Origin: Macrostomum lignano
Taxonomy: Eukaryota
Direction of reading: 5' to 3'
Assembly: GCA_002269645.1 (NCBI GenBank)
Contig: NIVC01000761.1
Coordinates: forward strand, 62,001-126,000
DNA: 64,000 nucleotides
Under the pieces are notes generated by a model. The model was not told the DNA's origin and made no database searches. It saw only the letters and a list, made by a program, of their open reading frames with translations. The position numbers and the translations under genes are program-made. Below, piece by piece: positions 7,817 to 17,200 of the stretch. Each line of letters opens with the position of its first letter. The stretch's first letter is position 1.

Positions 7817-10800
7817 ATGATGGTGCACCTGTGCAACTTGCTTTTGATTGCCCTGCTCTGCCTGCCACTGTTTGCAGATGTGGCCTTGCAGCAGTCTCTC
7901 TGCTTTGAGGATGCTCCATGTCAGAAAATTATCTGTCCTGGCAATGAGAGTGAAACAGTCTGTGCAGAACAAGGGAAAGATTTTTACATATTTAATAAAA
8001 AACTAAGTTTCGATCCTGTAGCAGCAAATTCGATATGCAGGCTGAAGGGAATGTCGGTCAGTCTGAATGCACCAGCCTGCCCTCTGTCAGCTGATAAGCT
8101 CACCAAGGCGCTCTCAGAATCGTAAGTGTTGAGTCTGCTGGCTTATCAGACTGATTCTCATTTGATTGTCAAATCAACTGCGGCGCTCCCTCTCCTCTCC
8201 TTCCCTCACACCCAGACGCAACGCCTTTTATCAATGACATTGTCCCACAACCAGCTGTAACCCACAGCCAACCAAAATATAAATTTATTGCAGGACAAGC
8301 TGCTTCAATCGTTCCGCGACGACTTGTGTCATAAAAAATCCGGAATCGCTCAAAGCTTGTCTGCCTGATGCCTGCATGACTGTGGAAAGGGAGTTGCAGT
8401 TCTATTATTACTGCGGTGAGCTCTGGCCTGTCTATCTGTCTATCTATCTTTTCTATCTATCTATCTATCTATCTATCTATCTATCTATCTATCTATCTAT
8501 CTATCTATCTATCCATCTATCTATCTATCTATCTATCTATCTATCTATCTATCTATCTATCCATCTATCTACCTATCTATCTAATCTATCTATCTATCTA
8601 TCTATCTATCTACCTATCTATCTATCTATCTATCTATCGATCTATCTATCTATCTATCTATCTATCTATCTATCTACCTATCTATCTAATCTATCTATCT
8701 AATCTATCTATCTATCTACCTATCTATCTATCTATCTATCTATCTATCTATCTATCTATCTACCTATCTATCTATCTATCCATCTATCTATCTATCTATC
8801 TATCTATCTATCTATCTATCTACCTATCTATCTATCTATCTACCTATCTATCTAATCTATCTATCTAATCTATCTATCTACCTATCTATCTATCTATCTA
8901 TCTACCTATCTATCTATCTATCTATCCATCTATCTATCTATCTATCTATCTATCTATCTATCTATCTATCTATCTATCTATCTATCTATCTACCTATCTA
9001 TCTATCTACCTATCTATCTATCTATCTATCTATCTATCTATCTATCTATCCATCTATCTACCTATCTATCTATCTAATCTATCTACTAGTATCTATCTAC
9101 CTACCTACCTATCTATCTATCTATCTATCTACCCATCTATCTATCTATCTAATCTATCTATCTATCTATCTATCTATCTATCTATCTATCTATCTATCTA
9201 ATCTATCTATCTAATCTATCTACTAGTATCTATCTACCTATCTATCTATCTATCTATCTATCTACCTATCTATCTATCTATCTATCTATCTAATCTATCT
9301 ATCTATCTATCTATCTATCTATCTATCTATCTATCTAATCTATCTATCTAATCTATCTACTAGTATCTATCTACCTATCTATCTATCTATCCATCTATCT
9401 ATCTATCTATCTATCTATCTATCTATCTATCTAATCTATCTATCTAATCTATCTACTAGTATCTATCTACCTATCTATCTATCTATTTATCTATCTATCT
9501 ATCTATCTATCTATCTATCTACCTATCTATCTATCTATCTATCTATCTATCTACCTATCTATCTATCTAATCTATCTATCTAATCTATCTACTAGTATCT
9601 ATCTACCTATCTATCTATCTATCTATCCATCTATCTACCTATCTATCTATCTAATCTATCTACTAGTATCTATCTACCTACCTATCTATCTATCTATCTA
9701 TCTATCTACCTATCTATCTATCTATCTATCTATCTATCTATCTATCTAATCTATCTATCTATCTATCTATCTATCTATCTATCTATCTATCTATCTAATC
9801 TATCTATCTATCTAATCTATCTACTAGTATCTATCTATCTATCTATCTATCTATCTATCTATCTATCTATCTATCTATCTATCTAATCTATCTATCTAAT
9901 CTATCTACTAGTATCTATCTACCTATCTATCTATCTATCTATCTATCTATCTATCTATCTATCTATCTAATCTATCTATCTATCTATCTAATCTATCTAT
10001 CTATCTATCTATCTATCTATCTATCTAATCTATCTATCTAATCTATCTACTAGTATCTATCTACCTATCTATCTATCTATCCATCTATCTATCTATCTAT
10101 CTATCTATCTATCTATCTAATCTATCTATCTAATCTATCTACTAGTATCTATCTACCTATCTATCTATCTATTTATCTATCTATCTATCTATCTATCTAC
10201 CTATCTATCTATCTATCTATCTATCTATCTACCTATCTATCTATCTAATCTATCTATCTAATCTATCTACTAGTATCTATCTACCTATCTATCTATCTAT
10301 CTATCCATCTATCTACCTATCTATCTATCTAATCTATCTACTAGTATCTATCTACCTACCTATCTATCTATCTATCTATCTATCTACCTATCTATCTATC
10401 TATCTATCTATCTATCTAATCTATCTATCTATCTATCTATCTATCTATCTATCTAATCTATCTATCTATCTATCTAATCTATCTATCTATTTATCTATCT
10501 ATCTATCTATCTAATCTATCTATCTATCTATCTAATCTATCTATCTATTTATCTATCTATCTATCTATCTATCTATCTAATCTATCTATCTATCTATCTA
10601 TCTATCTATCTATCTATCTATTTATCTATCTATCTATCTATTTATCTATCTATCTATCTATCTATCTATCTAATCTATCTATCTATCTATCTATCTATCT
10701 ATCTATCTATCTATCTATCTATCTATCTAATCTATCTATCTATCTATCTAATCTATCTATCTATTTATCTATCTATCTATCTATCTATCTATCTAATCTA

Positions 10801-11266
10801 TCTATCTATCTATCTATCTATCTATCTATCTATCTATTTATCTATCTATCTATCTATTTATCTATCTATCTATCTATCTATCTATCTAATCTATCTATCT
10901 ATCTATCTATCTATCTATCTATCTATCTATCTATCTATTTATCTATCTATCTATCTATGTATCCATCTATGTATGTATTTATCTATCATGTTTATTTATT
11001 ATCAGTTACATTATTTTACTATGTGGGACTCGGGAGTACAAGTGTTTATCCCAATTATTCACTGACAGTGGACCGGGCAACAAGCGCACCCCCTGTCACT
11101 ACTAAGCAACGCTTGACTTCCACTGAATCAGCAACTCCAACAACGACAGTAGAGACTTCAACAACCACCGCGTTTACAACAGCCACAACTAGTGGCTCTA
11201 CGTCAACTGTATCCAAGACCACGACTGGAACTACTTTGACAACCACAGCTGGCGCAAATCCTACTA
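7817..11266 (+). CDS. Adhesion GPCR N-terminal module A: signal peptide + Cys-rich C-type-lectin-like domain + short Thr/Ser stalk
   Basis: Exons 7817-8121 ([20 protein letters not shown]..., gtaagt), 8294-8415 (TSCFNRS...FYYYC, gtgag) and 11069-11266 (DRATSAP...NPT, gtaagt). Phases 2,1,1 are consistent, and the last donor is compatible with the acceptor at 16427. Confidence 0.75.
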
Positions 11267-14200: not shown

Positions 14201-17200
14201 GAAACTACTGCTGCTCTACCGGAAACTACTACTGCAGACCCGGAAACTACTACTGCAGAACCGGAAACTACTACTGCAGAACCGGAAACTACTACTGCAG
14301 AACCGGAGACTACTACTGCACTACCGGAAACTACTACTGCACTACCGGAGACTACTACTGCACTACCGGAGACTACTACTGCACTACCGGAGACTACTAC
14401 TGCACTACCGGAAACTACTACTGCACTACCGGAAACTACTACTGCACTACCGGAGACTACTACTGCACTACTGGAGACTACTACTGCACTACCGGAAACT
14501 ACTACTGCTCTACCGGAGACTACTACTGCACTACTGGAGACTACTACTGCACTACCGGAAACTACTACTGCTCTACCGGAAACTACTGCTGCTCTACCAG
14601 AAACTACTACTGCTCTACCAGAAACTACTGCTGCTCTACCGAAAACTACTACTGCTCTACCAGAAACTACTGCTGCTCTACCGGAAACTACTACTGCAGA
14701 CCCGGAAACTACTACTGCACTACCGGAAACTACTACTGCAGAACCGGAAACTACTACTGCAGAACCGGAAACTACTACTGCAGAACCGGAAACTACTACT
14801 GCAGAACCGGAAACTACTACTGCAGAACCGGAAACTACTACTGCTCTACCGGAAACTACTGCTGATCTATCGGAGACTTCTACTACACTACCGGAAACTT
14901 CTACTGCTCTACCGGAAACTACTACTGCTCTACCGGGAACTACTGCTGCTCTACCGGAAACTACTACTGCTCTACCGGAAACTACTGCTGCTCTACCGGA
15001 AACTACTACTGCTCTACCGGAAACTACTGCTGATCTATCGGAGACTTCTACTACACTACCGGAAACTTCTACTGCTCTACCGGAAACTTCTACTGCTCTA
15101 CCGGAAACTACTGCTGCTCTACCGGAAACTACTGCTGCTCTACCGGAAACTACTACTTCTCTACCGGAAAATACTGCTGCTCTACCGGAAACTACTGCTG
15201 CACTACCGGAGACTACTACTACACAACCGGAATCTACTTCTCTACCGGAAACTAATTCTCTATCGGAAACTACTACTACTGCACTACCGGAAACTACTTC
15301 TCTACCGGAAACCACCACTTCCCTACCGGAAACTAATGCTACACTACTGGAAACTACTACTGCAGTACCAAAAACTACTACTACACTACCGCAAACTACT
15401 ACACAACCGAAGACTACTACTGCTCTACCGGAAACTACTGCTGCTCTACCGGAAACTACTACTACACAACCGGAAACTACTTCTCTACCGGAAACTAATT
15501 CTCTATCGGAAACTACTACTACTGCACTACCGGAAACTACTTCTCTACCGGAAACCACCACTTCCCTACCGGAAACTAATGCTACACTACTGGAAACTAC
15601 TACTGCAGTACCAAAAACTACTACTACACTACCGCAAACTACTACACAACCGAAGACTACTACTGCTCTACCGGAAACTACTGCTGCTCTACCGGAAACT
15701 ACTACTACACAACCGGAAACTACTTCTCTACCGGAAACTAATTCTCTATCGGAAACTACTACTACTGCACTACCGGAAACTACTTCTCTACCGGAAACCA
15801 CCACTTCCCTACCGGAAACTAATGCTACACTACTGGAAACTACTACTGCAGTACCAAAAACTACTACTACACTACCGCAAACTACTACACAACCGAAGAC
15901 TACTACTGCACTACCGGAAACTACTACTGCACTACCGGAAACTACTACTGCACTACCGGAAACTACTACTGCACTACCGGAGACTACTACTGCACTACCG
16001 GAAACTACTACTGCACTACCGGAGACTACTACTGCACTACCGGAAACTACTACTGCACTACCGGAAACTACTACTGCACTACCGGAAACTACTACTGCAC
16101 TACCGGAGACTACTACTGCACTACCGGAAACTACTACTGCACTACCGGAAACTACTACTGCACTACCGGAGACTACTACTGCACTACCGGAAACTACTAC
16201 TGCACTACCGGAAACTACTACTGCACTACCGGAAACTACTACTGCACTACCGGAAACTACTAGTATGCAACTAAAAATTCTTGCGTGGGAAATCCCGATT
16301 TCATAATTGAAAAATTCCCTGCCAATCGGTTTAATTACTACTATTAATAATTTACGCTAACTGTTGTTTCCAAATGAGTTCAAGGTAAAAATCTTCAATT
16401 AAAACTCCTTAACTCCTCATCCACAGCGCCCACCTGCCCGCCCGGCTCCTACCCTCGTCTAATCAACACTCCGGTGGAATTGCCGCCGTCCGCTCGGCGC
16501 TACATCTGCTTGCCTCTGGCCGAGGTGGGCGGTGAGGAATGCCGGAAGTTGGCCAAAGCCGCTCTATCTGTGTACCAGACTGAGAAGGGCTCGTGCGCTG
16601 AGGTTCCAAATAGTGTTGACAATGTGGACAGCACCGTAAGTTGCTAATGGCGTTCGTTGTTTTTCATAATCAAATAATCCATTCCCCAGGGTCTGTGGTG
16701 CTTTAACTTTCGGTGCAGAGAGTTCTGCAGTTCTGAGAGTTCAAAAGTACTTTTTTTGAATTTTATAGTTTGAGCAGGCGCGTCGCCACTGGGGGGGGGG
16801 GGTAGGAGGGACATGCCAATGCTTTGTCCCCCCACACCACCTTGTGACCCGTTGTGGCAATCAATAATGTTTCTTCAGGGCGCCAAAATATAGCGCCTTC
16901 GGCGCTAAAATGAGTTGCCTTCGGCGCTAAAATGAGTTGCCTTCGGCGCTAAAATGAGTGCCTTCGGCGCTAAAGTGAGTTGCCTGCGGCGCTAAAATGA
17001 GTTGCCTGCGGCGCTAAAATGAGTGCCTGCGGCGCTAAAGTGAGTTGCCTGCGGCGCTAAAATGAGTGCCTTCGGCGCTAAAATGAGTGCCTGCGGCGCT
17101 AAAATGAGTTGCCTGCGGCGCTAAAATGAGTGCCTGCGGCGCTAAAATGAGTTGCCTGCGGCGCTAAAATGAGTGCCTGCGGCGCTAAAATGAGTGCCTG

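Follow-up and report, generated by a model that had tools for sequence, protein, structure and literature searches.

A candidate alternative first exon with an unrelated extracellular head in an adhesion receptor gene of the flatworm Macrostomum lignano

Can one receptor gene place the same signalling unit behind two different extracellular parts? This question is raised by a locus of the flatworm Macrostomum lignano that lies in a stretch of 64,000 nucleotides (contig NIVC01000761.1 of assembly GCA_002269645.1, positions 62,001–126,000 of the forward strand), which is here called the window and to which all positions refer unless another locus is named. The window is eukaryotic and minisatellite-rich, and its positions 7817–22386 (+) hold the gene of an adhesion G protein-coupled receptor (GPCR). 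Ahead of the five constant exons of this gene stand two coding units, module A and module B. An earlier note made from the letters of the DNA, hereafter the sequence-only reading, had taken them for duplicated, homologous ectodomain cassettes that serve as variable first exons of one receptor. Splice sites, phases and exon bounds were for the present analysis read directly from the window sequence, and they uphold the observation from which that proposal started: each unit opens with a methionine ahead of a signal-like stretch and runs to a phase-1 GT donor, and both donors fit a single acceptor at 16427.

Our answer to the question is a graded one. Module A is, by its splice phases and its cysteine framework, the canonical 5' end of the receptor gene. 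Module B occupies one exon (11975–16262) within the last 5' intron of the gene, and its open frame marks it as real coding sequence. We put the probability that it acts as an alternative first exon of the receptor gene, in itself an ordinary arrangement, at about one half. The heads encoded by the two modules are not detectably homologous by any of the sequence comparisons made, and the picture of duplicated cassettes is thereby the part of the earlier proposal that gives way.

The identity of the gene as a flatworm adhesion GPCR (class B2) follows from two domain matches and from its protein relatives in M. lignano, as had been claimed before. A Pfam 7tm_2 match covers residues 368–636 of the constant part (E 1.6e-31), so that a secretin-type seven-transmembrane (7TM) domain is present, and a Pfam GPS match (E 2.3e-7) lies at the end of the GAIN region, directly before the first transmembrane helix. 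The GPS motif CLCSHL/TSFAVV is canonical (a slash marks the point of cleavage here and the exon border or split codon below), and autoproteolysis at HL/T, with the cleavage position after 19697, is putative in this receptor. All five constant exons are on the plus strand. Constant exon 1 (16427–16635) begins with TPTCPPGSY and encodes a segment with four cysteines; constant exon 2 (18070–18481) holds the N-terminal part of the GAIN region; constant exon 3 (19300–20123) holds its remainder, the GPS motif and the first transmembrane helices; constant exon 4 (20544–21020) the other transmembrane helices; and constant exon 5 (21877–22386) the cytoplasmic tail, a poly-glutamine run and the stop codon. 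The run counts 13 glutamines (22036–22074) and falls in the predicted tail. Blocks of the constant part are identical to the M. lignano protein A0A1I8FDU7 of UniProt, the model of the window's own copy, which begins at constant exon 1. The constant part is 47% identical to that of the M. lignano gene BOX15_Mlig020369g1, whose locus we call L001, and 47–52% identical across the paralog genes, which comprise this gene together with BOX15_Mlig006096g1 and Mlig024433g1 at the homeologous loci L002 and L003.

Module A consists of three exons on the plus strand. The first (7817–8121) encodes the methionine, a signal peptide and the first half of a cysteine-rich head with the motif C-x5-C-x4-CPGN, and ends in phase 2 at the donor AATC/GTAAGT. 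The second (8294–8415) encodes the other half of the head (TSCFN...FYYYC), in a version named 2b below; it is entered in phase 2 and left in phase 1 at the donor G/GTGAGC. The following intron is filled by a (TCTA)n microsatellite of about 634 copies (8431–10987). The third exon, phase 1 to 1, is a short threonine-rich stalk that ends at 11266 with the donor CTACTA/GTAAGT and has two in-frame acceptors 63 nt apart, at 11006 and 11069. With the former, 21 more residues are retained, and these align to the last part of the BOX15_Mlig020369g1 head. When joined to the constant exons, module A gives an open coding sequence (CDS) whose length depends on the acceptor, 1039 aa for 11006 and 1018 aa for 11069, the latter being the figure reported earlier. 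Its head has 11 cysteines in 121 aa and no tryptophan, and its stalk 28 threonines in 66 aa.

That this module belongs to the receptor is indicated by UniRef100_A0A1I8HR05, a 512-aa gene model from a second, near-identical copy of the gene. It runs from head A through exon 2 to the stalk, entered at the equivalent of acceptor 11069, and on to ...GANPT/TPTCPPGSY..., skipping module B. Its junction is exactly the equivalent of 11266>16427, the join that had been predicted from the letters alone. Set against the window sequence, the model has 1 difference over the 104 positions of the head, 11 over the 66 of the stalk and 4 over 337 positions of the constant part.

The paralogs agree with this assignment, for they have the same N-terminal plan, with a C-x5/6-C-x4-CP head motif, a threonine-rich 1-1 stalk exon and a phase-1 join to constant exon 1. 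At L001 a phase-1 donor closes the head exon, next comes a threonine-rich 1-1 stalk exon, and the entry into constant exon 1 is again in phase 1; the stalk and constant exon 1 of the window gene have the same phases. From A exon 1 over A exon 2 and the stalk to constant exon 1, the intron phases (2, 1, 1) are those of L002, and the phase-2 intron after exon 1 falls at the same place as in L002, whose exon 1 likewise encodes a signal peptide and a C-x5-C-x4-CPG motif before a phase-2 donor. In Smith-Waterman comparisons against 1000 shuffles, A exon 1 scored z = 8.6 with L002 exon 1 and z = 4.9 with BOX15_Mlig020369g1, and A exon 2 scored z = 14.8 with exon 2b of L002 (8882–8991 of that locus), to which it is 42% identical and whose phases it shares. 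Between head A and the L002 head, 10 cysteine columns align at 31% identity. The cysteine framework and intron positions common to the paralog heads are thus present in module A and missing from module B. Because phases and cysteine framework match those of L001 and L002, and because the gene model joins A to the constant exons, we regard module A as the canonical 5' end.

As to the fold of this canonical head, UniProt labels two near-identical models that carry the head of the paralog BOX15_Mlig020369g1 (A0A1I8F2H4 and A0A1I8H8G3) as "SPARK domain-containing" and "DUF19 domain-containing". A Pfam scan of both found no family at E up to 10 and did not reproduce the labels. An exhaustive HMMER search with BOX15_Mlig020369g1 retrieved thousands of 7TM relatives, and its head part matched only A0A1I8F2H4, its own alternative model.

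Module B is separated from A exon 3 by a spacer (11267–11974, +) with a TATAAAT at 11791, an in-frame stop that ends at 11950, 8 codons ahead of the B start codon at 11975, and an AG at 11959–11960 in frame with the A donor. Two further features may be recorded. In the spacer, a run of 11 G (11447–11457) and a run of 10 C (11525–11534) lie 67 nt apart, possibly as a hairpin or as the ends of a small inserted element. An AT-rich stretch of 35 nt with ATTATTATAAAGG is found upstream of both start codons (7725–7759 and 11822–11854; 77% identity, E 0.04 in a small search) and may be a TATA-like element or an AT-rich chance match.

In the head of module B (11975–12595, +), a methionine and the signal-like stretch LFLLSLFSI precede a domain of 190 aa with 12 cysteines; the head has two tryptophans. 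In both modules the N-terminus is a methionine followed by the most hydrophobic stretch of the whole head, comparable to the signal peptides of the paralogs. The stalk (12596–16262, +) is a 21-nt minisatellite of about 177 copies that encodes (L/E)PETTTA units and ends exactly at the donor CTA/GTATGC, in phase 1. It amounts to 1221 aa (39% Thr, 13% Pro), and the contrast of about 66 to about 1220 aa drawn earlier between the two stalks is therefore sound. No stop occurs in these 1221 codons, the repeat units are 6, 7 or 8 aa long, and every variant of repeat length is a multiple of three. Ahead of the repeat, the head is open across 207 non-repeat codons, for which the probability by chance is about 9e-6. 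Module B is accordingly real coding sequence, as judged from a reading frame of that length, unlikely by chance, and from a frame kept throughout the repeat. The CDS that joins it to the constant exons is open as well and measures 2239 aa, as given before. A hidden intron was sought in the head, with a donor after FSWFC, and no convincing phase-1 donor was found.

Head B has no match in Pfam or the Protein Data Bank (PDB), and no protein like it is found among the protein-database cluster representatives searched. Word-based searches with module A plus constant exon 1 and with head B retrieved only A0A1I8FDU7, or nothing, and in an exact look-up neither the open reading frame (ORF) of B nor that of A exon 1 equals a recorded gene product. 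Since no counterpart appears in these databases or at L001–L003, module B is, on present comparisons, an addition specific to this gene.

How, then, would such an exon be used? Coding capacity, splice-site phases, the homology of head A to the paralog heads and the join of A to the constant exons in a gene model are shown, and on this ground the following arrangement may be drawn. The canonical transcript splices the three exons of module A to the five constant exons that encode GAIN/GPS, 7TM and tail. Between the stalk exon of A and the first constant exon, the intron has gained the gene-specific 4.3-kb coding exon B. Transcription of B would begin at a start inside the intron, or its RNA would receive a cap through trans-splicing of a spliced leader, with the spacer 11267–11974 as candidate site of its promoter or trans-splice acceptor. 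The B donor at 16262 would then be spliced to 16427, yielding a second receptor isoform in which the GAIN/7TM unit is unchanged, the ligand-binding head is another one, and the stalk is far longer and heavily O-glycosylated.

Module B is likely joined to constant exon 1 because it is on the receptor's strand and ends 165 nt ahead of that exon; because its repeat stops exactly at a GT in the required phase 1, for which we estimate a chance of about 1/48; because this GT sits in an AGT triplet, while the stalk encodes serine by TCN codons only and never by AGT or AGC; because the GT dinucleotide is rare, with 6 occurrences in the 3.7-kb stalk; and because signal peptide, cysteine-rich head and threonine-rich stalk form the layout of a family N-terminus. 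At the shared phase-1 acceptor CCACAG/CG (16426/16427) the split codon A/CG reads as threonine for the A join and the B join alike. Module B also has its own start codon with an in-frame stop before it, in addition to a phase-1 donor that fits the shared exon, as expected of an alternative first exon.

Several observations weigh against this use of module B. Its donor GTATGC is the sole non-GTRAG donor among the eight of the gene, in a species in which GTRAG makes up about 65% of the donors (PMC8629364). No B-like exon lies at the corresponding place in the introns of L001, L002 and L003, and no transcript, gene model or database protein with head B is found, in searches that covered cluster representatives only. 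The promoter hint is limited to the TATAAAT, which precedes the start codon of B by 184 nt, and the AG at 11960, 14 nt before the ATG, misfits the motif YTNCAG (PMC8629364). In the last segment of the intron (16263–16426, +) the unspliced B frame reads 14 codons on to a stop at 16304–16306, and an ATTAAA follows 92 nt further, at 16398.

With this nearby stop and ATTAAA, a self-contained B gene becomes possible, and it forms the main rival, one that we hold to be somewhat unlikely. Module B would be an independent single-exon gene nested in the intron and would encode a secreted mucin of 1443 aa, the receptor would be made from module A alone, and the match in GT phase would be a coincidence. 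In its favour, B is a complete ORF with start and stop, has the TATAAAT and the ATTAAA on its two sides, and encodes a head unrelated to that of the receptor family; the weak donor, the skipping of B in the gene model of the second copy and the paralog loci devoid of B all suit it as well. It has to accept, on the other side, an in-phase GT at the very first non-repeat base and an AGT triplet alien to the serine codon usage of the stalk. It also implies a polyadenylation site on the same strand that would roughly overlie the host acceptor 16427, which is awkward, and a protein of signal peptide, cysteine-rich head and threonine-rich stalk with nothing after it, which would mimic the N-terminus of a receptor.

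A different and improbable course is that B enters transcripts that start at module A, either whole by way of the AG at 11960, giving head A and head B in tandem, or as the stalk alone by way of a CTGCAG site, giving head A on a long stalk. Both joins are in frame, and the stalk segment 12597–16262 has phase 1 at either end, a symmetry found also in the stalk exons of A and of the paralogs. The sequence-only reading had singled out an acceptor at 12596/12597 for such a chimera; it exists and is in phase, but it is the first of 20 identical phase-1 CTGCAG sites that arise from the Thr-Ala-Glu codons of the B repeat, and as their by-product it is in no way special. The acceptor at 11960 fares no better, since it lacks a pyrimidine tract besides misfitting the YTNCAG motif, and with 8 open codons ahead of the ATG an in-frame AG would arise about half the time by chance. 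The most natural reading of a methionine and the most hydrophobic stretch of the head, placed directly behind an in-frame stop, is that of an N-terminus, which speaks against the inclusion of B behind A.

Quite improbable is the arrangement from which this study set out, in which A and B would be homologous ectodomain cassettes that arose by duplication and serve as variable first exons, as in the clustered protocadherin or UGT1A genes. It can point to two modules that are both phase-compatible with the constant acceptor and to a similar count of cysteines across about 65 residues in each, and the cysteine domains had been aligned by eye. The alignment proves no better than chance. Head A and head B gave E 0.6 in BLASTP and z = 0.1 in Smith-Waterman comparison against shuffles, and head B gave z from -1.0 to 0.6 against separate pieces of the family head. 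Profile comparison of the HHpred type, which had been suggested as a check, yielded no significant similarity either: hhalign with head B against three small family profiles returned probabilities of 0.07%, 0.1% and 0.8%. The best hhalign match between head B and the family (P = 0.07) covers 36 columns, which are the stretch earlier aligned by eye (ANSIC/ADGSC and ACPLS/LCDLS, the slash here pairing aligned residues), and is to be taken as a hint only. At the DNA level no similarity between the modules was found by blastn, and a duplication of A that includes flanking DNA was rejected, the match being just the 35-nt AT-rich one upstream (E 0.04). The C-type-lectin-like pattern seen earlier in the cysteine domains found no support as a fold for the heads either, with no Lectin_C match for either head at E up to 10 and no tryptophan in head A, where that fold has conserved Trp-containing core motifs of the WIGL type. 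Searches of PDB sequences with the heads found no matches, and AlphaFold2 reached a pLDDT of 34 for head B from a single sequence and 35 for the alignment of BOX15_Mlig020369g1 with A, so that the models are unusable for comparing folds. All unbiased sequence tests are thus non-significant, and the idea of homologous cassettes is not supported by any of them. Gene structure agrees, as there are two units only, of which A has three exons with introns conserved in the paralogs, and B has one exon and an additional C-terminal part of 80 aa.

Finally, that B is a decaying or non-functional remnant, such as a captured piece of another gene not expressed as protein, is highly improbable: it would suit a gene-specific insertion without external support of any kind, and it sits badly with a non-repeat ORF of 207 codons that is intact and a frame kept through 177 repeat units whose length variants are all 3n.

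With module B as an alternative first exon remaining the reading that we prefer, the paralogs suggest that the canonical head may be varied in another manner. L002 carries three head exons upstream of its annotated start (5589–5908, 6374–6645 and 8882–8991 of that locus), and L003 has them at 3648–3965, 4527–4799 and 6066–6185; none of these is annotated. They include two versions of the exon for the second half of the head, 2a and 2b, which are intact in both loci. By homology, exon 2a corresponds to the second half of the BOX15_Mlig020369g1 head (z = 6.2) and exon 2b to A exon 2 of the window. Since both run from phase 2 to phase 1, they cannot be used in series. The window gene has 2b only and BOX15_Mlig020369g1 has 2a only, a distribution that points to mutually exclusive exons which formed a pair in the ancestor and were then lost differentially. 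The introns of L002 and L003 are 96–98% identical, which leaves a comparison for selection on 2a and 2b without power. A wider proposal, which we consider rather unlikely, is that this receptor clade may diversify its ligand-binding head in two ways: through B in the window gene, brought in by an intronic start or by spliced-leader trans-splicing in which module A is discarded as an outron, and through mutually exclusive 2a and 2b in L002 and L003. The NCBI models lack the head exons, that of BOX15_Mlig006096g1 starting inside the stalk exon and that of Mlig024433g1 at constant exon 2, and the existing annotations of the window gene and of these two related genes are thus incomplete.

Most introns and the 3' flank of the receptor gene are filled with micro- and minisatellites with periods of 4–68 nt. 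Besides the block in module A intron 2 they occupy 16879–17512, 17761–17969, 18498–18905, 19044–19246, 20174–20466, 21080–21844 and 22425–22896, and many of them generate long spurious ORFs on both strands. Elsewhere in the window, minus-strand segments at 30779–31100, 31011–32225 and 33583–34146 include an exon for a CAP / cysteine-rich secretory protein domain (Pfam CAP, E 2e-12). Two ORFs on this strand, interrupted by repeats of the (CTGT)n type, are identical over 163 residues at the N-terminus, as would follow from a tandem duplication within the region. A further minus-strand ORF (57138–58238) has a type-I KH RNA-binding domain at its start (Pfam KH_1, E 5.5e-17), followed by a region rich in Gly, Ala and Pro.

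To which known systems does the locus compare? The clustered protocadherin and UGT1A genes are alike in silico, as 5' units, each with a start codon and a signal peptide of its own, lead to a single constant acceptor; in the window gene both donors are in phase 1 and fit 16427, and the join of A to constant exon 1 is the one present in the gene model of the second copy. The defining trait of those clusters is a tandem array of homologous variable exons, and the window gene, when tested, shows none. Its two units are not detectably paralogous, and one of them is multi-exonic and common to the paralogs, the other a gene-specific addition. The analogy made earlier is hence a misfit.

Neurexins of the alpha/beta type offer another comparison: a first exon inside an intron supplies the signal peptide together with an N-terminus particular to the isoform, and is then joined to common downstream exons. 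There the internal isoform is the shorter one, whereas in the window gene it would be the longer one (2239 versus 1018–1039 aa). The B stalk is in turn like the PTS domains of mucins, being a long tandem array of short units rich in Thr, Ser and Pro in one large minisatellite exon, here some 177 copies of a 7-aa unit. It differs from mucins in that it precedes a GPCR exon rather than lying between von Willebrand-type or SEA domains, and its O-glycosylation is assumed. Mucin-like stalks rich in Ser, Thr and Pro ahead of the GAIN domain are common in adhesion GPCRs.

A further parallel is found in the adhesion GPCR genes themselves, which as a rule have several promoters and several 5' start exons (PMC6667449; PMC13197933). 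The mouse and human ADGR genes with alternative 5' start exons (Knierim et al. 2019, PMC6667449; review PMC13197933) likewise keep one GAIN/7TM unit behind alternative 5' exons and differ at the N-terminus. Module B, in contrast, would not truncate or trim the ectodomain and would replace it as a whole, with an unrelated cysteine-rich head and the 1221-aa stalk, its use being an inference; and in a flatworm spliced-leader trans-splicing could stand in for the second promoter. Even if B is used, the gene is a further example of an alternative 5' exon arrangement that is already known.

What the locus means for the receptor family depends on how module B is read. If it is a nested mucin gene, the locus is ordinary. 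If it is an alternative first exon of the receptor, one signalling unit would be served by two unrelated sensing heads, held away from the membrane by a stalk of 66 aa or one of 1221 aa. In a regenerating flatworm that is genetically tractable, nature would then have set up a clean test of the way in which a mechanosensitive adhesion GPCR is tuned by the length of its stalk and the identity of its head, and the gene would show how a new ectodomain can be grafted onto a receptor via a first exon gained in an intron.

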